Positions 4,890 through 37,900 of a DNA stretch of 64,000 nt are shown in pieces. Positions within the stretch are counted from its first letter, which is position 1. Every line of letters begins with the position of its first letter. Made by a program: the position numbers and the translations under genes. Under the pieces are notes generated by a model. That model worked only from the letters and a program-made list of their open reading frames with translations. It was not told the DNA's origin and ran no database searches. This DNA comes from Diplonema japonicum (lineage: Eukaryota; Protista; Euglenozoa: Diplonemea), in NCBI GenBank assembly GCA_964019335.1, contig OZ025655.1, positions 186,001 to 250,000 of the forward strand, read 5' to 3'.

Positions 4890-7800
4890 TCATGCTACTA
4901 AATATGCCTTTCCTGCGCTCTCCACAGTGCCGGGGAGGGTACTGCGCTCTATGTTTGGGACTGTTATTTGTTCGAAATTGATGTCGTTCTTTTTGAGTGT
5001 TTTGGAAGACGGGAAGGCACTATTCGAGGACAGCATCTTCTTGGTGCTTGTCCCCACCGAGTTCAGTTCGGGGCTGTGATTCATCTCCGAGAGCGCAGCA
5101 GCCACGATCAGCAGGGAAGGGTCGCTGCACAACGACCTAATTAAGTCCACGTCCTTCTTATTGAAGGCCTCTACATACTCCTGCCCCCAGTCCCACGAGG
5201 TCAGCTCGTTGCTGCCTAGGTGCATCAGTCCCTTGGCCAGCATACTGGCACGCACCTCGCATATCAGAATGCTCTTCTCTTCTATGTCCCAGGATGCCAT
5301 GGGCCGTATGACACCTTTTAGCGACGGGTCCCCTGATGCGCTCCCAGAGGCAGGCATCGAGCCTATCAGGTTGAAGCACTTGTACGATTTGCACGCGGTT
5401 GCCAGCTCCTCGCAGAGCGCCACTGATTGCCCGATTACTATGACGTATTTCTGTCCCTTGTTCCCCACCGAACCATAGAAAACTGGGCCTGTTGCCAGTC
5501 CGATCGTGCAGCCTTCAATCGTTCTGCCGCCCCTCGTCAATTGCGAGTAAAACAGCCCGATGCACCTGATTCCGTTTTGCATGTGCCCTACGCACCTCAG
5601 CGGTGCGCCCCACGACATTGAGATGTGCGAGTTTGCTACCGACACGATGCTGCCGTTGGTCCTCTCCACCACGATCAGCAGATGCGAGAGCACCACGTTG
5701 ATGGCGTCCAAGGGGTCCGTCGTCAGCGAGGACACGAGGGAGCTATAGTCGATGTTCACGCAGCCTATCGTTGCTGTCTTCGAGGTGAAGGCTACGTTGG
5801 ACGATGTCGTTGCTGCCATCGCCGTCACAGTCGAGTGCACAGTTGACACGGTGCTTGCCGATGCAGAGTGCTGACGCTCCTTCATGCTCCGCGGGCTGAT
5901 TGGGGCCTTTTCCCTGTCTCGCAGTAGTTCATTCACAGCACCCTGTCTCCTCTCAGGAACGAGTAAGTAAAGCCTCGTCAACCCTGTGGTGCCCCTCAGT
6001 TGCTGCTGCCCAATGTCTATCACAGCTACCTGTTCTAATGTAGACGGCAGATTTTCAACCACTTCTGATGTCACGGCTACAGCGCCTCCTACTGAGGCTG
6101 CCTCGACACGAGCCGCTTTGTTTACTGTTGGCCCTAAATAATCCGTTCTGCCTGTCAAAGGGTTCTGCTCCAGCTCCACTTCACCAAAGTGGATACCAAT
6201 TCTGATGCGCAGCCCCTTCCACACACCGGCGACATCTTGGCAAAGCGGAAGCTCCAGCAAATCGGCAGGCCATTCAGCTGTGAGAAGTGCAACCTGCACG
6301 TCTGTAGCGAAGACGATAGCGTCCTCAGGTGAGTCGAAAGCCACCATAAAAGCATCGCCAATAGTTTTCACCTCGTACCCGTTGCTCTCCCTTATGCATT
6401 CCCGAATAATAAGGTTGTGTATCTTGAGTCCTTTCTTCATCCCACTGGGACACTCCTCCCATGTTGCTGTCGACGATTGGATGTCGGTGAAGGTGACAGC
6501 TGCGTTCCCGTTGACACACGGCGGCGACCTGTCGGCGTCGTTCGCCAATTGGAAGCTGCTCTCGTCGAATAGAGAATCCGGGATGTAGGCTTTGTACTCG
6601 CTGAGGTTGCGGATGGCAACCAGCATCCCGTCCTGCAGAAGACCAACCTCCTTAACGGAGTAGGGCGTTTGCTTTACAAGGGTCTCCGCCTCGTCAAGAT
6701 CCATCTTGTTGAGGGGAACCATTGCGGTAGCTAGCAGTGCAAGGGGGCGCGAAATGAGAAGCACCTCTGAGAAGCCGATGATGACGTCGAAGGCAAACAC
6801 AATGACAACAAATCCGATGAACAGGCGGAAGGCGCTCTCCATCTCACGCTCGACACTGGACACGGAACGGAACCAAAAGAGATGCACAGGCTTTAATGTG
6901 TCCGCACCTGTCGGTGTGTGTATGTTCACGTACCGCATCCAATACTCCCCGCCACGTGTGTTGCCTCGCACGAACTCGTTCGGGTTCGACTCGTTCAGTC
7001 TCACAACAACGTCCTGCACAGAGTGAGGGAGCTGCCTAAGAAGCTTGAGGCACGGGTTGTCCTTTTTCTCCGAATCCTCACGCGGTATAGTGCAGCCTTT
7101 AACGATTTGCGCCTCCGGGAAATTCCCTGCAAAGATGGAGCTGTTCAAACCGTGGTAGACATTGGTGAGGAGCAAATCTGCTTCCGTCACGTAACTGTTC
7201 AGGCTTTCCGCCCACACCGCCGTGAGGAAGTCTGCAATGATCATGATGATGTAATCCTTCAGGAAGGGGTTCTGCTGGAAGCCCCGCACGATGTAGTTGT
7301 ACGAGATATACACGAAAGTGTTCCCATCACTGCTCTCCCATTGTGCAGGGCCGCCCCAGTACGACACGTTGTTCACACCGGGGCCTCTCTTTGCCATGAG
7401 GTCCTCGCCCGCTAAGATCTCTTCGAACTCAGCGTTGGTGTAGTTATAAACTGGCTTGATGGGCACAACCAATGTGGCGTCAATGGCGCGGCACAGCACG
7501 CACGGCTCTCCGCACTTGCTCGTGTTTACAAAAGGATCGTAATGACAATTCACGTACTGGCGGCTCCCGTCCTTGAGGGGGTCGTACCACGTGAGCTCTT
7601 GGAACTTGTTTGAGTGGTTCGTCTTTTGAATTCCTAGGATCTGCGCAGACTCTTGCAGCTCGCTGAACCTCATGTCACTAAAAGCCCTGACACGTAGCCA
7701 TCTTCCGATCTCCTCCTGAGACGACAGGGAGGTAAAGGTGTCCAACACGGCAGCGTACTTTCTCGTCTGAAACTCCAGCTCCTGGAAACTCATCTTTGAG

Positions 7801-7973
7801 CTCACCTGCAGCGCCATTACGTCAGTGCTGCTGCTCTGATCCACTGTGATCTCTAAAATCCTCAGCCCCTCCGTCCACATGAGGTACCCTCCCAACAAAG
7901 AAGCTGTCGTCGATACTATTCCCGTCCATAGAATGAACCATTTCGTAGAGAACCTCATCCCCCCTGTCGACAT
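4890..7973 (-). CDS. Receptor-type adenylate cyclase: 2 TM, extracellular sensor, intact class III cyclase plus degenerate second cyclase domain (~1027 aa)
   Basis: TMs WFILWTGIVSTTASLLGGYLMW and LFIGFVVIVFAFDVIIGF; catalytic motifs FTDIQSST, YEVKTIGDAFM, RIGIHFG, DYLGPTVNKAARVE; later IGLATGPVFYGSVG repeat lacks the catalytic Asp residues. Start placed at ATG 7973; upstream ORF part is pyrimidine tract. Confidence 0.9.
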   Translation of the reverse strand: MSTGGMRFSTKWFILWTGIVSTTASLLGGYLMWTEGLRILEITVDQSSSTDVMALQVSSKMSFQELEFQTRKYAAVLDTFTSLSSQEEIGRWLRVRAFSDMRFSELQESAQILGIQKTNHSNKFQELTWYDPLKDGSRQYVNCHYDPFVNTSKCGEPCVLCRAIDATLVVPIKPVYNYTNAEFEEILAGEDLMAKRGPGVNNVSYWGGPAQWESSDGNTFVYISYNYIVRGFQQNPFLKDYIIMIIADFLTAVWAESLNSYVTEADLLLTNVYHGLNSSIFAGNFPEAQIVKGCTIPREDSEKKDNPCLKLLRQLPHSVQDVVVRLNESNPNEFVRGNTRGGEYWMRYVNIHTPTGADTLKPVHLFWFRSVSSVEREMESAFRLFIGFVVIVFAFDVIIGFSEVLLISRPLALLATAMVPLNKMDLDEAETLVKQTPYSVKEVGLLQDGMLVAIRNLSEYKAYIPDSLFDESSFQLANDADRSPPCVNGNAAVTFTDIQSSTATWEECPSGMKKGLKIHNLIIRECIRESNGYEVKTIGDAFMVAFDSPEDAIVFATDVQVALLTAEWPADLLELPLCQDVAGVWKGLRIRIGIHFGEVELEQNPLTGRTDYLGPTVNKAARVEAASVGGAVAVTSEVVENLPSTLEQVAVIDIGQQQLRGTTGLTRLYLLVPERRQGAVNELLRDREKAPISPRSMKERQHSASASTVSTVHSTVTAMAATTSSNVAFTSKTATIGCVNIDYSSLVSSLTTDPLDAINVVLSHLLIVVERTNGSIVSVANSHISMSWGAPLRCVGHMQNGIRCIGLFYSQLTRGGRTIEGCTIGLATGPVFYGSVGNKGQKYVIVIGQSVALCEELATACKSYKCFNLIGSMPASGSASGDPSLKGVIRPMASWDIEEKSILICEVRASMLAKGLMHLGSNELTSWDWGQEYVEAFNKKDVDLIRSLCSDPSLLIVAAALSEMNHSPELNSVGTSTKKMLSSNSAFPSSKTLKKNDINFEQITVPNIERSTLPGTVESAGKAYLVA

Positions 7974-8156
7974 GAGTGACGGAGAAGGAATGAAACGAAA
8001 AAATAATTGCAACGAAAGATATAAGAAATAAAAGGAGGCCAGTCTTGGTTGGCTCCCTGCTTGACTTAACAATTGCAAGTAACCGTGCCAATAATATGAA
8101 AAAAGAAAAGCAAAAAGAAAAAACCTTTAAAAAAAACATGCTCGTAAGAGGCACTT

Positions 8157-16748: not shown

Positions 16749-17684
16749 TTTCGATTGCGTGCAGATACAAAGATTGCGCACTCTGGAAAGAGTATCAATG
16801 TATGTAAACTTTTCTTTTTTCTTTTCTTTTTCTTTTTTTTTTGTGTGTATGTGCAGTGTACCGCGACTGTGATAGAAAGAAAATTGTGTTTTTTATGTTC
16901 TTACACCAGCTCCAAAAAAAGAGGGGGGGGGGAATACTTTGAAAGAAAAAGAAAGTATAAAAAAAAAGGAGGGGGGATAGGAATGAGGGTGATGGTTCAT
17001 TCAGCTTTTTCAATCTTCTTTTTCTTTCTCCCCCCCCCCCCCTCCACTTCCTTTTTCTATTTCACTGAGCCTCAAGGGTATATATTCCCCTCACTGAACT
17101 AAACAACCGTATTTATTATTTCTTTCACTGCCGTGTTCTCTTATTTTTTATTTTCTTCTTTCTTGAGAGGGTGAAAAAAAAAGACTTTTCTATTCTTCCG
17201 TCATTCTTCTTCTTACAAAAAGGGGGTGGGGGTGGGGGTGGGGCAGACCTCGCGCAGTGTAAAGAAAAATCAGAAAGGTTCGGTCTGCACCCTTTTCAGA
17301 GAAGAAAAAAAAAAAAGAACAAATAAAATCTTATTCACCATTCTTCCTCATGTGCTTTCTCTGCTGTGGAATAAAACAGTTAGCCCCCCCCTCAGTGGCC
17401 CCTCTTGGGCTACTACGGTGTAACACCGTCAAAGTAAGCATGGCAGCTCACGGGGAAATATCAAGATAAGAAAGGGGGGGTAAAATAAGACAAAAAAAAC
17501 ATTAAACTTCTCTCTTTTTCTTTCTTGAAGGTAATCTACATAGGGAGGAGAGAGAGAGAGAGAGTAAAAAAAAGGGGGGGGGGTTGCTCACTGTAATCTT
17601 CTCATTCTGTCTCCCCACCCCCTTTCTTTTTCCGTACAAAGGTGCATCTGTTGGTACCAAAAAAAAAAAATGTATAATCTTCTT

Positions 17685-17745
17685 TTACGGAAAAACGAGA
17701 ATGACGGACCTAAGTTCCCCTGTTTCGAACCACTCATGGAGCGCT

Positions 17746-17777
<32 letters not shown>

Positions 17778-18724
17778 CCCGGCATACAACTATCAACTTC
17801 CTTTAGGACGATGTTGAAAAGCGTAAGAAGGAAAGCAGAGTGCGTAACAACTGCAATTGATGTCTCAGGGCGGGTCGCCAGGTATTCTAGAAACTCGGCA
17901 GCTCGCTTGGAGGTGTCAAGCCAAGACTCCCCATTGCATCCCTCCTTATCACGAAGCGGGTCTTCCTCAGCTATCGAAGAATGGTCAACCGCTGGAAACT
18001 CACGGTGAAGCTCAGAACGGGGTCGGCGCCTATCGCAAGGGTTGCCGTGAGCCCTCTCCCGCAACAACTCGCAGGCGGCAAAGGGAACCGATCGTGAGGC
18101 AAATGCAATGCACCCTGTCTCAGTAGCCCGCCTTAACGGGGACACCAAGACAAGTTCTACCTGTAGTTCGGCTGTCAATACAAATTGTGATATATCGGCA
18201 GCTTGTTTCTTCCCCAGGTCTGTTAATCTTGCATCAAGCCATTCTGTGCTTTTGTATTGTTCCTTGCCCTTCAGCCTCGCTGCCGAATTTGACGTCCCCT
18301 CACCGTGGCGTAAGAAGTGAATGACCTTGCGGTTCTCCCCAAGAGGTACCTCTCCAACGGGAACCGCCACCACCTCCGTCAAGGGCGCGTGAGCTTCCAC
18401 GGTCGATGCAATTTTCTCCATTTTCTTCTCTTTGCTCTCTTGTGCTTCCGGGAACACTCTTGTAGATAGTGCCCCGTACCTTGTAGGTCTATATCTGTAA
18501 TCCGCGCTGCCTGATGCAATGCTGCTTCCGCAGATCGACCTTTCCAGCCTGAATTCTTCAGATGTCGTGCCGCTTAGGTCCAGCATCACAGACTTCACCT
18601 CTCTCTTGTCTTCGATGCTGTCCGACTCTTCTGTCTCCTCTAGACATTCTTCATTCCTAGCCCTTGCCTTTAAGCAGCACCCTACAGCCGCTACTCCGAC
18701 TCCCACCGATGCTGCCTGCAACAT
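17685..18724 (-). CDS. Histidine phosphatase / phosphoglycerate mutase-like protein (331 aa, 2 exons)
   Basis: IHFLRHGEG, DARLTDLGKKQA, VSPLRRATET, LRE..PCDRR, VVTHSAFL. Removing intron 17744-17787 yields the family-like end WFETGELRSVILVFP*. Confidence 0.9.
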
Positions 18725-19274
18725 CCCTTCCTGTGTGGTTGTGTAGTGGTTGCAATGTGATCGACAGAAGAAAAAAAAAGAGTTGGTCTGTTGTGTGCAA
18801 AGGTATCTTGCAGAAGAAGGTTGAAGCCGAACAAAAAGTTGCCTTGACTTTCTCTTAGCAAATAACAATTCATATTTATAACAATTGCTTTTTTTTTTTT
18901 CTTTTTTTTTCTTTTCTTCTTTTTCTTGTTCAAAAGGCCAAAAGAAGAGAAAAAAAAAGACGTAATTAAAAATTCAAATAAAAAAAAAGAATCGATGTCT
19001 TCATTTGTTTTCTCGAAGCAACAGACGGAAAGGAAGGGACGTCAGTCGTCAGACTCGAAGAAGGAGAAAAAAAAAGGTCCTTTTTAAGGTATGCGTCTTT
19101 CGCTCACCGGCGAGAAAAAAAACAAGTATCAATCATTTTTAACAAGAAATAAGGAAGAAGAAATACTTAAAAAACAGAGAGGGATATAAAAAAAAACCCA
19201 AGCGCCTTTCTAAAGGCACCTTCGGGGGAAGGTCAGGGACAAGAGTGTTTAGATTCAGAAGCCGCGCGTGTATT

Positions 19275-22200
19275 TCAGCTCCCGTACGTGTAGGCGGCTT
19301 CTTTGGTTTCCACGACGTGCCACATGTACCAGGTGCCGATGGTGCGATAGGGGCGCCAACATTTCGCTAGCTCTTCCATTTCTTTAGCTGGAGGGAAGTA
19401 TTGCACTTGAGTTTCGCTAGTAGCATCGTGTGGAGAGAGGCTGTAGAGCTTTTGGAATGCCTTCTGCACGGCGATGTCGCCCACAGGGAGCACGTCGTGG
19501 CGGCCTAAGTTGAACATCATGAACACATGCGAGGACCACTCCCCCATGCCCTTGATGCTGCACAGGGCTTTCAGAACATCCTTGTCTTCCATCATGTCCA
19601 GCTTCTCGTCTGTCAGCTCCCCAGAGGTAAACTTCTCACAGATGTTACGCACGTAGCTCACCTTCCTCTCGGACAACCCTGCCTTCCTGAGAGTGAGGTC
19701 ATCTACAGCGTTTACCGCCTCCAGGGTGATCTCTCCACCTACACACTCCGCAAACCTTGTGAATATGCTATTCGCTGCTTTCATGCTTATCTGCTGGAAC
19801 ACAATTGTTCTTACCAGAGACTTGAAGGCAGGATCATTCCCCAGCTGGCTGACCATGTCCACAGGCGGCCCGACCTGTGCGATGACGCTAGCCAGGATCG
19901 GGTCCCTTTCCGTCAACCAGGCCAGCCCCTGCACAGACGACTCGTTGGTCATCCTCTTCGGGGTCTTCGGCAGGCTCGCCTCAAACTCCGCCAACTCGCG
20001 TAAATCCTCCATTTCCTGCTCCGCTTTCCTCTTCCTTGCTTCTGCCGCTGCAGCTTTTGCGGCTTTTGGGCTTGGCTTCGCTTTCTTTGCCTTTGTCGGT
20101 GATTCATCCTCGTTCTTCCGTTTCCCTCCCCCTTCATCACTTTTCGGGGTTCCATTCGTGTTGCTGACCTTAGCCTTAGTCTTGTCTGCTACCTCAGGTG
20201 CCGCTTCAGTGACATTGATCTGCTGGTGGAACGCTGCAGCCACGCTGCCCTGTATGCCCGATTTCGATTTGCCACCACCAGCTGCGCCTTTTCGCGGTTG
20301 TACGTGTTTCATAGCTGTGATTGACGCCTCGACAGCACGCTCCTGAAACAGCCGTCCAAGGGGGTCAATGTACTGTCGGAAGAACGCACCGCACAACCTA
20401 ATGTTCGCCGCTTCTACCTCCTCGATCGTGCCTTCAGCATAGATGATGTTTAGGACGAGCTCTTTGGTTTTCTGTCCCGGACGGTCGACTCTTCCCTTCA
20501 TCTGCTCGATGAGGTCGCCTGGCTGTGGCCTGCAGATGATGCTGTCTGCCTCTTCTTGCAAGTTGAGACCATACGCGCCGCGCTGCGTTGTGACTACGAG
20601 CGGCCCACTTCCTCTCGGAGCTGAGGCCTTCCCGCTGTTCCACGTTCTAGACTGCTTGCACTTCTTCTTGATACGGCCAAGCTCGTTTTCTGAATTTGCA
20701 AACATAAGCACGTGGCGGTCCGCTTCCTGCAATTCTTTGCACTCCTTGTCAAACGCCTCCAGCATGGCTGTGTGCTCCCAGTGGTCTCTTACGACGCTCT
20801 TTAGTTCGCCATAGACAAGCCGCGCGTCCTTCTGTGACCTTGCCGCCGCTGCCAGTCGTGATTGATAGAGCTCCATTGCACTCTTCGACATGGGCACAGG
20901 GATGTACCTGAGCTTCCACGTCCTCACCCTCTCAGGGAGGTAGCAAATGATGTGCTCCGCCAGCAACGTGGGAAGATACTTCTCAGTCCTTGGTAGCGCT
21001 GACCGCAGCATCCTTATCATGTAGAAGAGCTTCGACATTCTAGAGCGGAACAAGGTGGCCGACAGCATCAGTACTCCGCACCTGCTGGCAGCTACCTGCC
21101 GCCACGCTTCGATCGTCTGAAGTGCTGAGTCGTTCTGGACAGACAGACACTCGTCGATGACCACCATGTCCCATCCTGCCTGTGACACAAATGGCTTGTC
21201 CCGCAGCCTCCCAAGAGTGCTCACGACTACTGTGTTGCAATCGACCTTGGGTGCCGTAGAGTAGCGCCTCGTTGACGGGTGCGCTGCTGGCGGCTTCCCG
21301 CCGTTCGAGACTCCCCTCGAGATGAGGTAGCCTGTGTGCTGCTGTGCCACAATGTGCAGTCCTCTGGTATGCAGAAGGGCTTGTTGGATCCATTCGCCAA
21401 TGAGGTCGTTGTTTGGCACCAACACCAAGAAACCATGCCTGCGCAGCTTTCTCTTGGCCAACCACTCTGATGCTCTTACACAGCATGCTAAAGCCGTTAG
21501 AGTCTTCCCAGCTCCCACTGCAGACGCATCGGCAAAGCCACGCTTCCCCTCAGCAACGCCAGTAAGCACCCTAGTGACGGCTTCATTCTGGTGCGACCAG
21601 AGGTCAGTCGAGACCTCTGGCACGGTGATATCTTCGCTGACTTCGTCGATTTCATCTTCGAAACTGAAGGCGCTCTCGTTGTCTTCATGCAGTGCCGTGT
21701 GGAAGGCCTCGCCGTCGTCATATGAACCAAAGGCCATAATGTTGAGCACACGCTGTAAGTGAACGAACTGCGCCCCGTGCTGAGTCAAGGTGAAGCGGAG
21801 CTCCGATGTTCTCTCCAACACCGCAGGGTACAAAGCCTGCAGGGCGTAGAGAATTCTCAGCAGAACTCCTTCTGAGAGCTGCTGGAGAGCGGGGCCTGTT
21901 TTCGTCCCGTCTCTGGCACACCTGCTGACCTCCACGACGTCACCTTCACGTGTTGCGATCTTTATCACCATGTCACGCCAGATGGACTTCGGCAGCGTCG
22001 ACTGATTAGCAAGGTGCACCCAGTCATAAATATCATCACACGTGGTTGTCTTACTGCTGCGGAACCACTGTGCGTATTGCTCTAGCTTCTCGAAGCTCGC
22101 CAGCACATCATCTACCTTCTCATTCGGCAGGTAGAACATCTTGCGCAAGATATCCCCCAGTTCCTGCGGCAGCTGCATGACCCTTCTTGGCTCATTACAC

Positions 22201-24752
22201 GAGACCAGCAAAGCTGAAGCATTGAAGGGATCGACTTCTTTTCCTTCTACGAAATAGTGCAGGTAGTCATTCTCGTTGTTTTCGATCCTCACGGACACGG
22301 TGGTCTTCTCCCACTTCCAGATAAACCCCACGGGCGGAACAGGAAGCAGCACCTTTTTTTCTTTCGAAAGCACTTTGTACGCTTCGCTCTTGGCATTGTT
22401 CTCAAGGATCTTGTCAGACAGACCCCTCCGGCCCGTCTGATCACCTGAATCAGTCCCGCTCACCTTCTGCACCAGGTATGGCTCGTCCACCGTACCAGCC
22501 AATGTTACCAAACAAGAGACCTGCTTACCTTCTGCAGATGCAGCTGACACAGCCTCTCGGGAACCAAATAGTTGCAGGAACGCGGTCCTTGCCTCAAAAG
22601 GAGTTGGTTTTCTTCCACCCATTTCATCCTCTGTCGGTAAATACACAGGCTTGTGCCGGATGGGTGCGGGCGCTTTATGTCTCCTACCATGCAGCATATC
22701 GTGGAAGTGCTTCTGGAGCTGCTGAATTACGTTCAGGAGGAGTTCTTCATGTTGTGTGAGGCGCTGCCCGTCACGCTGGCTCTTCCACTCCTTGGCCACC
22801 TTGTCTGTCTCGTTCTCTTTGCATTCATAGATCCCCAGCTTGTCGGGTGTGATGTCGAGTGCAGCGTTCGGCGTGTCGGTGACGAAAGAGAGGAACCTGT
22901 ACGTCTCTTGTGCGGCCCCGTTCAGCTTCTGCTTCAGCTCACGCACGTTCAAACCGGATGACAGTGACCACAAAGCTTCTGCTAGAGCACGCAAGGAGTG
23001 CTGCATGGTGTCTGTGGGTACCCTCGGCAGTCCCGCCTGCAGCAGTAGTAGTGTCGTGGGCCTCAAATGCGAGTCGGCAGCAGCAAGGTGTACTTCATGG
23101 TTCAATTTCTGATTGTGAGCCGACTCAGTATAGTTTGCAGCTTCAGCATGGCACTCTGGCAGCGTGAACACCGCCTTAGCCCACACACCCTTGTCACCAA
23201 GACCACCAAGGTACCTGAGAAGTATCAACTTCTCCCCGCGTGTCACAGGGAGCCCGAGCAACGCTATTCTTAAAGAATTCCTGATGCAGCATATCTCAGC
23301 GGTGCCTTCTTCAACAGACAGGTTCTTGTTTGTCATCTGGTTGCGCGACGACCGTCTCCAGCCTTTCCAGGGCCACAGCGATGCCGAGTGGTCGTTGCCC
23401 TGCAGGCGCAGCGCCGTAATTATGAGTTTCTTCTTCAGTTGCTCTGTCAGACGAAAACTGTCGTCCACATGGGCGACTAGAGTAAGCCCTAGCAGCTCCT
23501 GAAGGCAAAGGTACTTACCGTCATCAGAAGCAAAAGGTCCCACGTCTTCTAGTGCTGATATGAACACTTTCCATAGCGCAGTGCGTGTCCCTGTAACCTT
23601 CCGGTACTGCAACTCTGGGACATGGTGCGCAGGTGCACCACACAAGTGGTTGATGGACTGCAGTATGGGAGCTGAGCCGGAAAGGGTGATACCCCTTCGA
23701 ATGGCCTTCTGCAACAAGGAAGCAGGATAGAGTATGTTGCAGCAAGAAGAGGATAGTGGCGAGAGGAGGGCAGAGGGAGCGGGCTTGACAGCGACATGCG
23801 CAGGAGGTGGGGTAGAGAGGAGCGTCTTGTCAACGGCCAAGATGATAGTTGCGGCGTTACAGCTGAGCTCCTCGTTGAGCCCAGTCTTCATCACTGAAGA
23901 CTTGTGGATGTCAGATTCTGGCTCGAAGCCTAGCATGGCGCGGTATGAATGTGTCTTTTCTGAGCCGTAGGAGGCAATGGCCTCCTTCCAACCCCCCTTC
24001 GGAGCTTTCTTAGGAAATGGGTTAATAGAAACCTTAAAGGGATTGTTGGTGATCTCAACGACACTGACAGGGGTGACATTCTGTGCTTCGAGGGAACGTA
24101 AGAGAGGGGCAGGGGCTGTCCAAACCTCCTGTGGGGCGAGCTGAAGATTGTACGTAGCAAGCTTGAAGGAAGCGGAAGGGAGCTCTGATTGGAGGTGGCT
24201 GCCATTGTCGAAGCGGCGGCCGATCCACTCACTGGGGACCAAAGGCTTGCCAGTCAGAGTGTCACACCCACAGTCGTCAACCAAAAACGGTATCTGCAAG
24301 GTGTCAGTTGCCTTCTGAAGGAGTCGGTCCTGTGCTTCGGTATCGAGAAGGCCTTCGTCTTCATCTGTGTACTCAATAGGTGGTGTGACCTTCCACGCAA
24401 CATGCCAAGCCTTGATTAGCGCCTTCACGGTCGACACGTCACTGTGCTGTAAGAGGGAGCTCAGCTGCTGCATGTCCTCACCCTTGCTAACTCCGTCCAT
24501 CGCTTTCGCTACTACATTGTGGTTCAGTACCGGCTTGCACCCTTCCAGGCATCTCACGGCAAACCCTGTGCACCCTTCCCTCATCAACACTAACCTATCC
24601 CCTTTTGCTACCCCATAGTTACCTACTGTTCTCAGCAGTGCTCCTTTCTGATCCACAGCCGCCTTGCCCTTGACATTCCCTTTGCTGAGGATGTCCCAAC
24701 TGCCAAGGCCAGACGTCGTTTTACGAAGAGCTGAGGTCGCAGCAGCTTTCAT
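19275..24752 (-). CDS. Fusion: uncharacterised N-terminal region + SF2 (SNF2-like) helicase/ATPase + AlkA/Mag1-type HhH-GPD DNA-3-methyladenine glycosylase (1825 aa)
   Basis: Single uninterrupted ORF. Helicase motifs LWSHQ, DASAVGAGKTL, VIDEC, LSAT, AYGLNLQ, QMKGRVDRPGQ. C-terminal FKSLVRTIVFQQIS, LRKAGLSERK, HhH LCSIKGMGEWS, LPVGD, WRPYRT. Confidence 0.9.
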   Translation of the reverse strand: MKAAATSALRKTTSGLGSWDILSKGNVKGKAAVDQKGALLRTVGNYGVAKGDRLVLMREGCTGFAVRCLEGCKPVLNHNVVAKAMDGVSKGEDMQQLSSLLQHSDVSTVKALIKAWHVAWKVTPPIEYTDEDEGLLDTEAQDRLLQKATDTLQIPFLVDDCGCDTLTGKPLVPSEWIGRRFDNGSHLQSELPSASFKLATYNLQLAPQEVWTAPAPLLRSLEAQNVTPVSVVEITNNPFKVSINPFPKKAPKGGWKEAIASYGSEKTHSYRAMLGFEPESDIHKSSVMKTGLNEELSCNAATIILAVDKTLLSTPPPAHVAVKPAPSALLSPLSSSCCNILYPASLLQKAIRRGITLSGSAPILQSINHLCGAPAHHVPELQYRKVTGTRTALWKVFISALEDVGPFASDDGKYLCLQELLGLTLVAHVDDSFRLTEQLKKKLIITALRLQGNDHSASLWPWKGWRRSSRNQMTNKNLSVEEGTAEICCIRNSLRIALLGLPVTRGEKLILLRYLGGLGDKGVWAKAVFTLPECHAEAANYTESAHNQKLNHEVHLAAADSHLRPTTLLLLQAGLPRVPTDTMQHSLRALAEALWSLSSGLNVRELKQKLNGAAQETYRFLSFVTDTPNAALDITPDKLGIYECKENETDKVAKEWKSQRDGQRLTQHEELLLNVIQQLQKHFHDMLHGRRHKAPAPIRHKPVYLPTEDEMGGRKPTPFEARTAFLQLFGSREAVSAASAEGKQVSCLVTLAGTVDEPYLVQKVSGTDSGDQTGRRGLSDKILENNAKSEAYKVLSKEKKVLLPVPPVGFIWKWEKTTVSVRIENNENDYLHYFVEGKEVDPFNASALLVSCNEPRRVMQLPQELGDILRKMFYLPNEKVDDVLASFEKLEQYAQWFRSSKTTTCDDIYDWVHLANQSTLPKSIWRDMVIKIATREGDVVEVSRCARDGTKTGPALQQLSEGVLLRILYALQALYPAVLERTSELRFTLTQHGAQFVHLQRVLNIMAFGSYDDGEAFHTALHEDNESAFSFEDEIDEVSEDITVPEVSTDLWSHQNEAVTRVLTGVAEGKRGFADASAVGAGKTLTALACCVRASEWLAKRKLRRHGFLVLVPNNDLIGEWIQQALLHTRGLHIVAQQHTGYLISRGVSNGGKPPAAHPSTRRYSTAPKVDCNTVVVSTLGRLRDKPFVSQAGWDMVVIDECLSVQNDSALQTIEAWRQVAASRCGVLMLSATLFRSRMSKLFYMIRMLRSALPRTEKYLPTLLAEHIICYLPERVRTWKLRYIPVPMSKSAMELYQSRLAAAARSQKDARLVYGELKSVVRDHWEHTAMLEAFDKECKELQEADRHVLMFANSENELGRIKKKCKQSRTWNSGKASAPRGSGPLVVTTQRGAYGLNLQEEADSIICRPQPGDLIEQMKGRVDRPGQKTKELVLNIIYAEGTIEEVEAANIRLCGAFFRQYIDPLGRLFQERAVEASITAMKHVQPRKGAAGGGKSKSGIQGSVAAAFHQQINVTEAAPEVADKTKAKVSNTNGTPKSDEGGGKRKNEDESPTKAKKAKPSPKAAKAAAAEARKRKAEQEMEDLRELAEFEASLPKTPKRMTNESSVQGLAWLTERDPILASVIAQVGPPVDMVSQLGNDPAFKSLVRTIVFQQISMKAANSIFTRFAECVGGEITLEAVNAVDDLTLRKAGLSERKVSYVRNICEKFTSGELTDEKLDMMEDKDVLKALCSIKGMGEWSSHVFMMFNLGRHDVLPVGDIAVQKAFQKLYSLSPHDATSETQVQYFPPAKEMEELAKCWRPYRTIGTWYMWHVVETKEAAYTYGS

Positions 24753-24864
24753 CTCTGAGAAAACAACCTTTGACAGAAAAAAAAAATAAAATAGCCGCTT
24801 CATAAAAACGAAAATAGTAGTCTAACAAATTCTATTACTATTTCACAAGCACCACGTTCTCCTG

Positions 24865-25401: not shown

Positions 25402-25614
25402 TGCAACTGCACTGGAGGGTAAAAGCTGATACAATCTCCATAATAAAAACAGAACTGGTTTAAAAAAAGGGGGGGGGGGGGAACGGTGTAAACTTATCGT
25501 TTTTTTTTCTTTTTCTTCTAAAAGAGCAGCATCCCAGAACTCCCAGAGCCCACACCGTGGTCGTTGAAGTCGAAGGTTGGGCTCCCCATGCTGCCGAGGC
25601 CTCCCATTGCAGCT

Positions 25615-25645
<31 letters not shown>

Positions 25646-26988
25646 CTTCTTCTTTTGATTTATACTATTAGCAGTCATCGAGTCATCGATCCCATTAACA
25701 CTCCCACTCACAGAGGCTGATGGGGTCTTACCGGACAGCTTCTCATTCATTATGTCATCGTTACTCAGTGCTGCAGCAAGGGTCTTGCTGCTCACAGGGA
25801 CCTGCTTCCCCATTTTTTCCCAACCCCCCCTGCCAACATTCTTGTGTTAGGAGGGAAAAGCAAGGGGGGGGAAGGGGAATCTAATAAGAGGGAAAAGAGG
25901 GGAATAATACACTCAAAAACTATTCATTCTTTTCTTTCCAACGCCCAGCTTTTGTTTTCTCTTCTTAAGAACATGATTTTTCTATGAAAAACTGCTCAGC
26001 AACAAAACCAGTTTTGTTTATTCTTTTTTTTTTTTGTGTGTATGGGGAAAGAAAGAGAGAAAAAAAATAAGATTATTCTTTTCCTTTTTTTTGAAAGCTC
26101 TTTTTCGTTACAAACAACTTTTTTCTTCCCCCTCTTTTCTTTTTGAGGGCTTGTTTAGCTTTTAAAAGAAAACGAAAAAAGAAGTCCTTTTGCTCAGCAG
26201 TTGGAGAGCAAAGACAAACCTAGAACTTGGGTCAGCAGTTTCCTGGTGCCAACATTCTTTTTGACAACTACAATAACAAGTGTTTCATTCTTATTTAAAA
26301 AAAAAGGGGGGGGAATAAGTCAGCTACCTGGGGAGGTGCGCTAATAGCCCTTAGCTAGAAAAGGCTACGGCTTCCAATAATAGGAAAATAAAACTTACTT
26401 TTGCTGGCCCGTGTTTCCTTTTAAGATAGAACTCCCCCCCCCCCCCCCTCCCTCCCGGCGAAAACACAATAGTCAAAGGAAAAGGAGAAGGTAACTAGAA
26501 TGGCTACCTCTTTTTTTGTATTTTTTTTTCTCTTTTCCTTCTTTTTCTCCAAGCATGATTTCTATTGTAACAAATAAACACATTCTTTTTGTTGGGGGGG
26601 GGAAGGATCTATGCAACAGATAAAAAAAATAAAACACTAAAATAGAGAGGAAACAAGGCAATCGGTTTTTCTTTACAACGTCAGCATGGAGGAAATAAGA
26701 GACGGATGGCTGTTGTTCTTGCACAGCAAAGCCGGGGTTGACCAGAAGGATAAGCCCTTCATTGTCAACATCTTGTTTTGAGCTTTCTAAGGTAGACGAA
26801 TATCGGCTATAGGGCTTGCTGCGCCCCTCCTGAAAAATAATAATAAAACAAAGAATGTGATTATGGGGGAAGGGGATCTAAAAATAATAACTTTCTTTTT
26901 CCTTTTTCGAAAGTCGTGATAAGGAGAAGTAAGGTGTTGCTACCCCCCCCTGCCAACCCGTCACCTCCGCGTGAATAATAAAACTTAA

Positions 26989-30943: not shown

Positions 30944-31786
30944 CTACTTAGATCTCCACGCACGCTGAATAGTAGTGGCAGGCATGCCGCCTATCCATGG
31001 GTGGTGCAATGCCTGCACAGCTGTCATTCTGTGTGAAGGATCCCGTGCTAGCAGCCGTCTGATGAACCCCTTCGCCGTTGCACTCACCTTCCTCCAGCAG
31101 GGTGATGAAAAGGACGGACCGTCAAAGCTGTGCATCAGCATCACCCTCACATCCTCAGTGCCGCCCCACGGCCGTTCTCCAGAAAGCAGGCAGTACAACA
31201 CAACCCCTACCGACCACATGTCCACAGCTGTGATCTCATACCCTGTGCGTTCCGCGGTACTGCCCCTTTCAACATGCATTCTGAGGATTTCATGTGCTTG
31301 GTAGAAGGTGGTCCCGACCGCATCTCTGTCCACCGTGGTATCATTGAACTCCAGAGACAGTCCTAAATCACACACCACTACCGATTCGATCGACTCGTCC
31401 AACAAGATGTTCTCGGGTTTCAAATCGCGGTGTGCGATGTTCTTGCTATGCAAGTAGGCCACGCCCTTCAGGACCTGGAGAATGATGGTCTTCCCAATCT
31501 CTTCAGCGACTGGCCCGTACCTGCTGATGTAGTCGTGCAGGTCGCGCTCCTTCCTGTCCAGTACTACATACTCCCCGTACTCGTCTATATTGTACACGCG
31601 GATCACGTTCTTGTGCTGCAGCTTTCTCAGTATCCGCTTCTCCCTTGCTACTGCCTCTGCCGCCTCCTGCGTCTTTGGTATCTTCAAGACACACTCCTGT
31701 CTGGTGACCGCATCCACTGCGCTCACAATGTGTGAGGATCGCCCCTCCCGTACTTTGACGGGGTTCGAGTAGCGATTTAAAAACAT
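30944..31786 (-). CDS. CAMK-like Ser/Thr kinase with C-terminal IQ-like motif (280 aa)
   Basis: VLKI, HRDLKPEN, DLG (for DFG), GTTFYQAHE (for APE), DMWSVG, ALHHPWI, TTIQRAWRSK. Confidence 0.88.
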   Translation of the reverse strand: MFLNRYSNPVKVREGRSSHIVSAVDAVTRQECVLKIPKTQEAAEAVAREKRILRKLQHKNVIRVYNIDEYGEYVVLDRKERDLHDYISRYGPVAEEIGKTIILQVLKGVAYLHSKNIAHRDLKPENILLDESIESVVVCDLGLSLEFNDTTVDRDAVGTTFYQAHEILRMHVERGSTAERTGYEITAVDMWSVGVVLYCLLSGERPWGGTEDVRVMLMHSFDGPSFSSPCWRKVSATAKGFIRRLLARDPSHRMTAVQALHHPWIGGMPATTIQRAWRSK

Positions 31787-32551
31787 CTCAACCTGTAGAA
31801 GCTCGGAATAAAATACAAGTGTAACATGAATACTACTATGGGGGATTATGGCTGAATAATCAGCCGGTTATTGGCTAGAGGCTAGTGAGCGATTTTGAGC
31901 CAGGTAATCTAAGGTGGTCCTCAAGGACAGTTCGGGGCGTGTTTCATTCTGAGAAGACATTTGGCAGGTGAACCGCAGAACCTCGAAGGGCTTCTTCGTG
32001 CTTTCAAGATGCTTCTCCACGCACACTGAATGGCGGTGGCAGGCATGTCGCCTATCCATGGGTGGTGCAATGCCTGCACAGCTGTCATTCTGTGTGAAGG
32101 ATCCCGTGCTAGCAGCCGTCTGATGAACCCCTTCGCCGTTGCACTCACCTTCCTCCAGCAGGGTGATGAAAAGGACGGACCGTCAAAGCTGTGCATCAGC
32201 ATCACCCTCACATCCTCAGTGCCGCCCCACGGCCGTTCTCCAGAAAGCAGGCAGTACAACACAACCCCTACCGACCACATGTCCACAGCTGTGATCTCAT
32301 ACCCTGTGCGTTCCGCGGTACTGCCCCTTTCAACATGCATTCTGAGGATTTCATGTGCTTGGTAGAAGGTGGTCCCGACCGCATCTCTGTCCACCGTGGT
32401 ATCATTGAACTCCAGAGACAGTCCTAAATCACACACCACTACCGATTCGATCGACTCGTCCAACAAGATGTTCTCGGGTTTCAAATCGCGGTGTGCGATG
32501 TTCTTGCTATGCAAGTAGGCCACGCCCTTCAGGACCTGGAGAATGATGGTC
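30988..32551. repeat. 503-bp identical direct repeat (30988-31490 = 32049-32551)
   Basis: Base-by-base comparison at offset 1061 found no mismatch; mismatches immediately on both sides. Confidence 0.93.
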
Positions 32552-32826
32552 CTAGCCACGTCTTCGGAGACCCTCTCATGCCGAGTTATGTAGTCGTGCA
32601 GGTCGCAGTCCTTCCTGTCCAGTACTAATACATTGGGCCTTATGTCATAACTGCGTATAATATTCTTGTGGCCTAGCTTATCAAGGACTCTCTTTTCCAG
32701 AATGCACTCCCTCCGACACGGGTCGTGAGGCACCTTCCACACCTTCTTCCCGCAGCATGTGGTCACGATCTCGTAGATCTCATATCTGGCCGTCGTCTGT
32801 CGGTGCACGACATGTTCTATGTTCAT
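31921..32826 (-). CDS. CAMK-like Ser/Thr kinase, tandem paralogue (301 aa)
   Basis: C-lobe identical to 30944-31786; divergent N-lobe (VWKV lysine retained); TAIQCAWRSILKARR tail. Confidence 0.85.
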   Translation of the reverse strand: MNIEHVVHRQTTARYEIYEIVTTCCGKKVWKVPHDPCRRECILEKRVLDKLGHKNIIRSYDIRPNVLVLDRKDCDLHDYITRHERVSEDVARTIILQVLKGVAYLHSKNIAHRDLKPENILLDESIESVVVCDLGLSLEFNDTTVDRDAVGTTFYQAHEILRMHVERGSTAERTGYEITAVDMWSVGVVLYCLLSGERPWGGTEDVRVMLMHSFDGPSFSSPCWRKVSATAKGFIRRLLARDPSHRMTAVQALHHPWIGDMPATAIQCAWRSILKARRSPSRFCGSPAKCLLRMKHAPNCP

Positions 32827-32897
32827 CAATCTCTACGGTGCTTGCGGCATCACTCATTCACGCAATAAGTCAGCTTAAAGCGAGTCTGGAAAGACTC

Positions 32898-34978: not shown

Positions 34979-37900
34979 TCACACAAAAAGCTCAAGACCA
35001 GAGCTGTTGTGACCTTCACTGTATAGTTCGTCACAGGTTGCATGGAAGAGGGCGAGAAAGCTAATGTTTTGTGTGATAACGCTACGCTGCCGCAACATCT
35101 TTGAGTACAGAGCACGCCGACAACGCGACTCAGCCAACTTCACAGCATATTCACGCATCGCTACAGAACGTCTATACGAGGCGCCAATATATGTGGAAGC
35201 ATAGTACTGGTCCAGAGTAACTCTCTTGTTCCTGTAACGAAGCGTGGGCAGCGCACGTATATCAGGAAAGTGGTTTCTCCAACCCTCTTCATGCTCTTTT
35301 ATCTCAATCTCCGAAAGAGAGACCCCGATGCTGAAACGTGCCAGAGGGATAAGCACCTCAACGAAATGTATAACACCACCGTGTTCGGGAATGCAGAACT
35401 TCCCCACCTTTTGTAGAAGTTCGATTCGAGAATATTCGGACGTAACGCCCAATGGCTGACCCAGCATCCTCAGTAACGAGGGGAACCTGTTTGTCGCTAT
35501 CAGCAAATCACCGTGAGGGTCGAATCGTGACCAACACGCTACGAATTTGTTCAAATCGCTCATTCTAACCTTGGACCGCTCCACGTGCACTGTAGTGCTG
35601 AAATTGTCTAAGATAATCGCGATGAACAGATTCAACATCACCTGTGCTGCAATAAGCAAAAACGATATAAAGTACAACGGGGGTTTCCATGTGTCGGCCC
35701 CGCAATCAACCCCTTCGGTGCAGTCCGGCGGCTGCACCATCAAATCGTGCATGATGCCGTTCCAGTCCTCCCCTGTGCAGGTTCGAAACAGCAACAACAT
35801 CGCCGACCCGAAATTATCGAAGTTCGCGTGGTACGTCAGGTACTCACCCCACTTCACACCGCTGAACAGGTTCACGCCTAGCGTGCTGTAGATGAAAAAC
35901 ACGAGACCCAGAAACAAAAATATGTTGCTGAGGTACGGGATGGAGTACCACAAGGTCTCCAACAAGACTCGCATGCCTTTTGAGGATCGCAGCAAACGCA
36001 CCATGCGCAGCACTCTAATGAGCTTCACAGTGGACGTCCATGATGCATTCGAGCTAAGCGTGAGGCTCGCCATGGCGAAGATTACCAAAATAAAGTCGAA
36101 GCGGTTCCACGTGTCTCTGAAGTACGCTGTGCGCCAGGCGTGCAGCTTGATGATCGCCTCCAGGATAAAGAAACTCGAGCATGCCATGTCCAGATAGTTG
36201 AGAACATCGACCCAATTGCTGTCGTGATGGTCGACTGCCATGATCAGGACGTTGATTACAATCACGCTGAGCACTGCTGTTTCAAACTCTTTGGACCTCG
36301 CGATCGAACTTGTAACCCAACGCAAGCCCCGTTTCGACTCAGGCATGATCACGATTGGGCGGAAGGTCAGGAGCAGCCTCTGCATCTCGATCCACCGTTC
36401 CTGCTCCGGTGACAACAGGGCACGGCCCTCCATATGCTTCTTCTCGACGTTGTAGTTGAAGATGACAACTCCGACAAATAAGTTCAACACGAAGAAAGAC
36501 CCGATTATGATGAACAGAATGAAGTACAGCCCGACGAGCGGCGATGCGTTCCGCTCTGGGCCGTGCCCCCTGTCCGTCCCGTCGATTGTGTTGTACATGA
36601 TCTTGGACCACAGCTCGAGAGTGGAGACCTCGAAGAGGGTGAGCAGAGCGGAGAGGATATTGTTAAAGTTCTGGTCGCGGATGCGCCACCTGCGCCACAC
36701 AAGCGTGTCGTTCCCTCCAAGTTGATAGAAGGTAGGGTCAACCCCCACGCAGGCTATCTCGGTGTGGATTGAGGGGTCGCTGCAGTAGTGGAGCTTTCCA
36801 CCAAATAGTTGTACACCTAAAATTGCGAAAACCAGGAAAATCAAAAACACCACCACAGCTACGTTGGCCACGCCAGGCAGCGTCCGGAGCAACGCCCGCA
36901 CCACAACCTTGAGCCCCACGTTCCTGTTTACCACTCGCAAGGGTCGCAGTGCTCGTAGGGTTCTGAACACCTTCACTATCTTGAAGTTTGCGAACACCAA
37001 TGCTAGCACCGAGATGCACACCACGGCTGCGTCGAGGATGTTCCACCCGTCGCGCAGGTAAGCACCCTTCCCACGCACCAGACCGAAGGCTATGATCTTC
37101 ATCACCATCTCTGCTATAAAGAGTGCCGTGAATATAATATTGAGAATCTCCAGTGCGGAGTTGTCGTCAGGAGCAGCGTTGGGGTCTTCTACAGCCAGAA
37201 GGACCGAGGAAGCTGTGATGATGATCAGAATGAACTTCTCGAACCACGGGTGCGTGACCACGAAGGTGAGCAAGACCCGCAGCGTGTTCGTAGAGGAGAA
37301 CACACGGAGTGAATACCCCCCGTTCGTCTCCGGAAACGGGAACTTATGCCGCAGAGACCTTGTGGCCAACACTGCCAAAGCACCCCCTAGTTGCTCTCCC
37401 GAGGATGTGTGCACATAAATCTCGAAGTGGTCATGCTCGTCTTCGGTTACTATCTCACTGAACTCTGATAACGCGGGAGCTAGGAAGGACGAGTGAGTGG
37501 ACCCCTGCGGGAAGGAAAACTTATCCAGCGACTGCAGCTTGGCCAGGAGAATAGCAGTCTCCTGCTCCTTTGAGTCGTCCCCGTCGTCATCCTCTTGATT
37601 CATATTTATGTCGAAGGAGTTAATAAGAATGGCGAGGAATAGGTTCAAGATGATGAAGTCGCCCACAAGGACCAACCCGACGAAATAGAGACAGGCAGCA
37701 GGGCTAGTCTCCCGCATGGCTGTCCACATGGGGCTCATCCAGTCATCGCGCGTGAGGATCTGGAAGACAGTGAGGAGGGACCAATAGAAGGAATCAAAGG
37801 TAGCACGGGGGGGCTCTTCGTTCTTATGGTTGAACGAACCACCGAAGAGCTGCATGCCCACTAGTGCCGCGATGAACAGGTACAACACGATAATGACGTT

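Follow-up and report, generated by a model that had tools for sequence, protein, structure and literature searches.

What does a DNA motor do in the same polypeptide as a DNA glycosylase? The question is raised by a gene on the minus strand of a 64,000-nucleotide stretch of the Diplonema japonicum genome (assembly GCA_964019335.1, contig OZ025655.1, positions 186,001 to 250,000; hereafter the window, to which coordinates refer unless stated otherwise). In the usual description, DNA glycosylases reach their lesions by passive diffusion. A first-pass annotation of the window had read the gene as a superfamily 2 (SF2) helicase fused to an AlkA-type glycosylase and had suggested that translocation or chromatin opening is coupled to base excision. 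The present analysis showed that the protein comprises a large N-terminal module, a Snf2-like ATPase, a basic linker and an AlkA/Mag-type glycosylase domain. The best reading of this protein, which we hold to be moderately probable, is a translocase driven by ATP and joined by a tether to an active glycosylase for alkylpurines, the two presumably acting in a coupled manner.

Architecture of the reading frame

The open reading frame (ORF) runs without interruption from 24803 to 19275 on the minus strand (1842 codons), in agreement with the single intron-free helicase-glycosylase frame proposed earlier, and the motifs listed by the first-pass annotation were all found at the positions it gave. 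The second ATG, Met18 at 24752, is the likelier start, because a pyrimidine-rich tract and two AG dinucleotides adjoin it upstream and the orthologues align from Met18. Read directly, the first 17 codons of the 24803 frame are a translated T-rich tract. Translation from Met18 to the stop codon at 19275-19277 gives a protein of ~1,825 residues. The tract upstream of Met18 is a candidate spliced-leader acceptor. A same-strand ORF upstream ends ~110 bases before the ATG region of the fusion gene, and this spacing, together with the tract, would fit a polycistronic euglenozoan arrangement. The features of the gene are as follows.

24753..24793, minus strand: pyrimidine-rich tract with two AG dinucleotides just before the ATG (sequence read directly)
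19275..24752, minus strand: coding sequence of the fusion protein; the open frame extends to 24803
23784..24752, minus strand: N-terminal module part a, residues 18-340, alpha/beta region, present in viral relatives too
21654..23783, minus strand: N-terminal module part b, residues 341-1050, helical region followed by an alpha/beta region
20319..21626, minus strand: Snf2-like SF2 ATPase, residues 1060-1495 (from Pfam, alignment, model and motif positions)
at 21599, minus strand: LWSHQ motif
21501-21515, minus strand: Walker A motif GAGKT
21144-21155, minus strand: motif II, DECL
21054-21062, minus strand: SAT motif
20472-20504, minus strand: motif VI, QMKGRVDRPGQ
19932..20318, minus strand: basic, poorly conserved linker, residues 1496-1624, mostly modelled as disordered
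19278..19931, minus strand: AlkA/Mag-type HhH-GPD glycosylase domain, residues 1625-1842 (from Pfam, the PDB and alignment)
19542-19550, minus strand: helix-hairpin-helix (HhH) hairpin GMG, within IKGMGEWS (G1752 and G1754)
19476-19478, minus strand: catalytic Asp1776 (VGD)

The fusion of an ATPase to a glycosylase stands. As a description of the architecture it was incomplete, however, in that it overlooked the N-terminal module of ~1,030 residues, which makes up more than half of the protein and is strongly conserved in the orthologue alignment.

The ATPase resembles Snf2 motors

Pfam ResIII matches residues 1068-1252 of the protein (E = 6.2e-09), and SNF2-rel_dom is matched by 7 of 11 orthologues and 14 of 18 viral relatives. 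An AlphaFold2 model of residues 1051-1842 has a predicted local distance difference test score (pLDDT) of 84.6 and a predicted template-modelling score (pTM) of 0.56. Its Foldseek comparison with the PDB gave at least 500 chains at E <= 0.001. The best 50 chains are almost all from Snf2-family enzymes (E 7e-16 to 1e-12), including Chd1, ISWI, CSB, INO80, SMARCAD1, the BAF/PBAF motors, ALC1, DDM1, SsoRad54 and RapA; the defence ATPase ZorD is also among them, and the compact Snf2 cores in this set have target-normalised template-modelling scores of ~0.5-0.65. The ATPase has the two-lobe fold, motifs I-VI and weak SNF2-rel_dom matches in common with the Snf2 family. However, the chromo, SANT-SLIDE, HSA and similar domains of that family are absent from the fusion, which has its unique ~1,030-residue N-terminal module instead. 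The earlier label of an SF2 helicase was thus right about a complete ATPase, whereas the generic term helicase gives way to Snf2-like in the Foldseek comparison. Snf2 enzymes are translocases on double-strand DNA rather than unwinding helicases, and by family membership the motor of the fusion is probably a double-strand DNA translocase that works without strand separation.

The G-AGK of Walker A, the DEC of motif II, the SAT motif and the core of motif VI (Q, K-G-R, D-R-P-G-Q) are invariant in 11 aligned orthologues, and the identity of the ATPase across 10 orthologues is 51-77%. Walker A, SAT, the two acidic residues of Walker B and the arginines of motif VI do not vary in any orthologue, so that an active ATPase is the economical reading of the alignment.

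The linker that follows has 26 Lys/Arg in 129 residues and ends in a predicted long helix; its Lys/Arg clusters resemble a nuclear-localisation signal (NLS), bearing out the earlier description of a Lys-rich, NLS-like linker. It varies from 129 to 257 residues among the orthologues (14-34% identity across 10 of them) and is basic in all those compared, with Lys/Arg clusters in most. The pTM is only 0.56 in an otherwise confident model, which suggests that the motor and the glycosylase have no fixed relative orientation. The model indicates a linker that would serve as a flexible tether between the two.

The glycosylase domain and the repair repertoire of the genome

The first-pass annotation had described an HhH-GPD domain with an intact hairpin and catalytic Asp, and Pfam HhH-GPD indeed matches residues 1664-1799 (E = 8.8e-16, 58.6 bits against a cut-off of 26.2) and all 11 orthologues. 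A PDB sequence search with the C-terminus retrieved B. halodurans Mag (2H56, E = 3.6e-32), Schizosaccharomyces pombe Mag1 (3S6I, 1e-20) and Mag2 (1e-18). A profile search of the domain gave E = 8e-46 for 3-methyladenine glycosylases and only ~2e-05 for OGG and AlkA(Ec). The hairpin glycines and Asp1776, which follows the hairpin at a distance of about 20 residues, are invariant in the 11 orthologues, and Asp1776 aligns with the Asp of 2H56 and Mag1. Across 10 orthologues the domain has 42-75% identity.

The stand-alone relatives listed are 163-337 residues long and annotated as 'DNA-3-methyladenine glycosylase II', which agrees with the earlier statement that AlkA/Mag1 enzymes are normally small, separate proteins. 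Those named come from land plants (Malvaceae), Nitrososphaerota and bacteria. Most of those listed are 35-43% identical to the domain, and one 327-residue metagenome protein is 52% identical. The C-terminal 218 residues align end to end with short AlkA/Mag enzymes (2H56, 3S6I and Deinococcus radiodurans AlkA2, 2YG8; E 3.6e-32 to 1e-18), with the hairpin and the catalytic Asp kept; however, those enzymes are separate proteins, whereas in the fusion the domain forms the last tenth of ~1,825 residues and follows a motor. The closest solved and named relatives by sequence are 3-methyladenine glycosylases and not Nth, MutY or OGG1, so that the glycosylase half appears to be an ordinary member of the alkylpurine Mag/AlkA group. 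Among natural fusions that join an AlkA-type enzyme to another repair function, Ada-AlkA of bacteria is, to our knowledge, the only one that is well known; the partner there is a methyltransferase and regulator rather than a motor.

The other HhH-GPD genes in the genome are only Nth-like, MutY-like (with NUDIX_4) and OGG1-like (with OGG_N). Neither AAG/MPG (PF02245) nor Tag (PF03352) was detected in a six-frame family search of the whole genome, which also yielded no further AlkA-like sequence. As judged from these searches, the fusion is the only AlkA-type alkylpurine glycosylase detected in the genome. The domain has arguably retained a real repair activity, because the searches for a further AlkA and for AAG and Tag found none. 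Diplonemids and several algal groups may depend on the fusion for AlkA-type alkylation repair.

Orthologues in four eukaryotic supergroups

A whole-length search retrieved full-length proteins with the same domain order, together with many marine metagenome contigs. The named carriers of the fusion are listed below.

Diplonemids: Rhynchopus humris, Lacrimia lanifica, Artemidia motanka and Diplonema papillatum (NCBI name 'putative helicase')
Euglenid: Euglena gracilis
Picozoa: two single-cell genomes
Haptophyte: Chrysochromulina tobinii
Stramenopiles: Hondaea fermentalgiana, Seminavis robusta and Aureoumbra lagunensis

Collinear orthologues are thus present in at least 10 named species of four supergroups. 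Eleven full-length orthologues align collinearly, and the ATPase and the glycosylase are the best-conserved parts across 10 of them. The D. japonicum protein is placed inside the diplonemid clade, with 68% identity to a Rhynchopus-type protein over the tree columns.

The possibility that such an architecture is already described and widespread, raised earlier, proved right in its second half: it is present in many protists, under automatic annotations such as 'DNA-3-methyladenine glycosylase 1 [Hondaea fermentalgiana]' and the Joint Genome Institute label '3-methyladenine DNA glycosylase/8-oxoguanine DNA glycosylase/superfamily II DNA or RNA helicase'. No paper describing or testing it was found in a literature search whose coverage of subscription journals is incomplete, and the earlier remark that no characterised enzyme has this architecture agrees with that result. 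The parts belong to known families; what is conserved and widespread in marine protists is their combination.

The N-terminal module and its giant-virus relatives

An AlphaFold2 model of the N-terminal module from a 42-sequence alignment shows a confident fold (mean pLDDT 85.2, pTM 0.83), with one alpha/beta region before and another after a long helical region. Part a has 21-44% identity among the orthologues. Part b carries the motifs LLQKAIRRG, EDVxPF, LWPWKGW and QHSL in its helical region and RTAFLQLFG, PPVGFxW, FNAS, WRD, EGVLLR and LYP in its alpha/beta region. Residues 18-1050 gave no credible match in Pfam at E up to 10, a Foldseek search of the model found nothing in the PDB at E <= 0.001, and nothing of use came from the ESM Atlas. 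The protein showed no profile similarity to the C-terminal domain of MgsA/RarA/WRNIP1 (PF12002), a domain not detected either by the six-frame family search of the whole genome.

An exhaustive phmmer search with the module alone returned 204 proteins. The matches that are not fusions are mostly 1,200-1,370 residues long and consist of the module and the ATPase without a glycosylase. In ~105 of the 172 proteins compared, some with a glycosylase and some lacking one, the module immediately precedes the ATPase. An alignment of 18 glycosylase-less relatives shares the signature motifs of the family, and the same alignment retrieved 28 IMG/VR loci, many of them on giant-virus metagenome bins. Two giant-virus contigs carry two paralogues each (L009 and L019 on 1,259,197 bp, L022 and L023 on 1,021,348 bp), and the paralogues of each contig fall in neighbouring clades of the tree described below. 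No AlkA-like ORF is present within 10 kb of the viral copies in the 28 loci. Foldseek matches in BFVD (E 1.8e-31 to 1e-10) bear the names 'DEAD/SNF2-like helicase' in Edafosvirus (A0A3G4ZTR7) and Pithovirus LCDPAC01 (A0A481YP43) and 'putative helicase' in Megavirus courdo7 (H2EBX1). The giant-virus helicases are homologous to the fusion and collinear with it over the module and the ATPase (phmmer E down to 1e-55), with the motifs LQKxIRRG, RxAFLxLFG, PPxGFxW, FDAS, WRD, VIDECLxVQN and QMKGRxDRPGQ in common. However, they comprise only ~1,200-1,370 residues and end after the ATPase.

A maximum-likelihood tree was built from 120 module-plus-ATPase sequences (quick search, LG+G4, midpoint root); 82 of its rows were flagged for unusual composition, and it is unrooted in substance. 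A branch with 100% support in the Shimodaira-Hasegawa-like approximate likelihood-ratio test splits 86 glycosylase-less sequences, including all the IMG/VR loci that entered the tree, from 34 others. The smaller side holds all 26 fusions and 8 glycosylase-less sequences, five of which (P0049, P0051, P0056, P0076 and P0169; metagenome proteins of ~1,300-1,370 residues) group next to all the fusions. Single-protein IMG/VR scans for this five-member group gave nothing informative. The fusion label needs as few as 3-4 changes on the tree, compared with ~24 for shuffled labels. This distribution is consistent with a single gain of the glycosylase, followed by a few losses or accompanied by truncated gene models.

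Proposed mechanism and alternatives

In the reading of a translocase tethered to an active glycosylase, the N-terminal module would most likely target or regulate the motor, as the accessory domains of other Snf2 enzymes do, and the ATPase, by family analogy, would track along duplex DNA without separating the strands. The basic flexible linker resembles a nuclear-localisation signal and would place the protein in the nucleus. The AlkA/Mag-type domain would flip out and excise alkylated or otherwise damaged purines, the range of substrates being that expected of its relatives. Translocation or a local distortion of the DNA driven by ATP could bring the tethered glycosylase to lesions or aid excision, and the motor may first clear a DNA-bound obstacle, such as a stalled polymerase. 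The fusion protein would in this way provide the AlkA-type base-excision activity of the cell against alkylation damage.

Precedents for such coupling exist. JBP2, a Snf2 motor with a thymidine hydroxylase, and DNMT5, a Snf2 motor with a cytosine methyltransferase, need their ATPases for the base-modifying step. JBP2 of kinetoplastids and DNMT5 of fungi and algae resemble the fusion in having a Snf2 motor and a base-flipping enzyme in one polypeptide; they differ in that the enzyme is a hydroxylase or a methyltransferase rather than a glycosylase, and in their Snf2 subfamily and accessory domains. The Snf2-glycosylase fusion would be a natural test of whether ATP-driven translocation or DNA distortion also serves base excision, as it serves hydroxylation in JBP2 and methylation in DNMT5. 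Its study, for which the genetically tractable Diplonema papillatum is available, would also give a first functional handle on the giant-virus helicase family and its 1,000-residue N-terminal module.

Several observations weigh against this reading. The ATPase is very divergent from the Snf2 family: its SNF2-rel_dom score is borderline (23.1 bits for the full-length protein and 26.9 for the segment excised from it, around a cut-off of 24.9), Pfam Helicase_C was not detected in the fusion protein or its orthologues, and motif II is DECL instead of DExH, the usual His being absent. A weak, partial AlkD-type match at C1:177862-178134 (26.4 bits) means that the fusion need not be the sole alkylpurine glycosylase. 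An intact Asp is no proof of excision, because the close relative Mag2 of S. pombe reportedly binds abasic sites without base excision. Viral homologues without a glycosylase imply that the primary job of the motor may be unrelated to base excision. In addition, two possible RNA runs from related strains gave fragmentary contigs with a higher depth over the last ~1 kb of the gene.

The chromatin opening proposed by the first-pass annotation is judged less likely than an action on DNA or on a DNA-bound machine, because the N-terminal module and the motor core are common to giant-virus helicases. Giant-virus replication is generally described as taking place mainly in cytoplasmic factories, away from the host chromatin.

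The similarity to Mag2 leads to the first alternative, in which the glycosylase is mainly a reader of lesions or abasic sites that recruits the motor to remodel a stalled polymerase or fork, as CSB, RapA and Mfd-type translocases do. Mag2 matches the domain nearly as well as Mag1 (1e-18 vs. 1e-20), the module and the motor exist without a glycosylase in giant viruses and so have a function of their own, and the best structural matches include CSB and RapA. However, the catalytic Asp and the hairpin glycines are invariant in all 11 aligned orthologues, the best PDB match is the bacterial 3-methyladenine glycosidase 2H56, and the lack of any other detected AlkA, AAG or Tag argues for retained excision. 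We consider a reader role unlikely.

The distribution of the family bears on a second alternative, in which the enzyme would remove deliberately modified bases, such as hydroxymethyluracil, base J precursors, methylated bases or those of modified giant-virus DNA, in epigenetic editing or antiviral defence, with the motor scanning processively. The family is common to giant viruses and to the kinds of marine protists that they are known to infect, and it is patchily spread over the eukaryotic supergroups. Moreover, Euglenozoa make base J, JBP2 and DNMT5 act on epigenetic marks, and bacterial glycosylases can be antiphage effectors. However, the glycosylase domain looks typical of the Mag/AlkA group (most of the stand-alone enzymes listed are 35-43% identical to it), and the fusion is present in stramenopiles, haptophytes and Picozoa, lineages not known for base J. 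The gene is also single-copy and slowly evolving in a housekeeping-type context, unlike a fast-evolving defence locus. A role in removing modified bases is therefore doubtful.

In a bolder form of the tethered-translocase reading, the N-terminal module and the Snf2 core would be a hitherto unrecognised DNA-tracking machine exchanged between giant viruses and their protist hosts and armed once by the hosts with a glycosylase, giving a processive, ATP-driven excision scanner that could act on lesions blocking replication or transcription, or destroy modified viral DNA. We put this forward as a speculation with a small chance of being right. If true, the protein would be the first motor-coupled DNA glycosylase and would represent a new Snf2 class defined by its 1,000-residue N-terminal module.

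A probable single transcript and an intact locus

Single ORFs spanning all the domains are present in four transcriptome assemblies, those of Rhynchopus humris, Lacrimia lanifica, Artemidia motanka and Euglena gracilis; the Lacrimia and Artemidia entries, the only two with full source labels shown, are labelled complete. These ORFs of relatives give the strongest indication obtained that a single mRNA is translated into the fusion. Among the sequencing runs on record as RNA, none contains the stretch.

Two separate products, made through an internal spliced-leader, poly(A) or start site in the linker, would account for the uneven depth of the possible RNA runs: in one of these from a related strain, a contig at 19116-20100 has a depth of 19.5, compared with 2-5 further upstream, and the linker is long, unconserved and disordered. 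However, the depth difference is compatible with 3' bias, and such contigs cannot show transcript ends. Within the linker, neither joints nor spliced-leader or poly(A) ends were seen in the fragmentary contigs of either run. In every orthologue the reading frame continues unbroken across the linker of 129-257 residues, and the four transcriptome assemblies with all-domain ORFs are independent. Two products from this gene are thus very improbable.

The weakest alternative, also named in the first-pass annotation, is an assembly chimera or annotation artefact joining unrelated genes. Nothing was found in its favour, and it is effectively refuted by the collinear orthologues in at least 10 named species of four supergroups and by DNA contigs from runs of different studies. 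These contigs agree exactly across the stretch, which is covered by a single piece in X3 and by two overlapping pieces in X8; X3 or X8 may itself be the source of the assembly.

Genomic setting and minor observations

The fusion gene is single-copy in the 62.5-Mb, 132-contig assembly. Its neighbours on the same strand are cellular genes arranged like a polycistronic unit (4890-39490, minus strand), of which the following were identified.

4890-8078, minus strand: adenylate/guanylate cyclase
17588-18868, minus strand: histidine phosphatase
30944-32829, minus strand: two tandem protein kinases
34979-39490, minus strand: four-repeat voltage-gated-type cation channel with a PKD-channel region

The surroundings of the fusion gene are an ordinary cellular run and not an integrated viral island.

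Long A/T homopolymers at 17670-17800 and 25460-25813 are read as poly-Lys or poly-Phe in mechanically derived ORFs adjacent to the fusion gene; these tracts are probably intergenic or untranslated regions (UTRs) rather than coding sequence. Inside the coding sequence, the assembly graph of the deep DNA run X8 breaks at 22407-22436, where a small contig has a loose end with an A-run. The break may reflect a minor variant or an artefact of the assembly, and X3 spans the site cleanly. Around the 3' end of the gene (19100-19260), contigs of two related strains or species (X1 and X2) are 95-99% identical within the coding sequence. Beyond the stop codon they show many small insertions and deletions, and below 19116 the sequence is unrelated, indicating that the 3' flank or UTR differs between strains.

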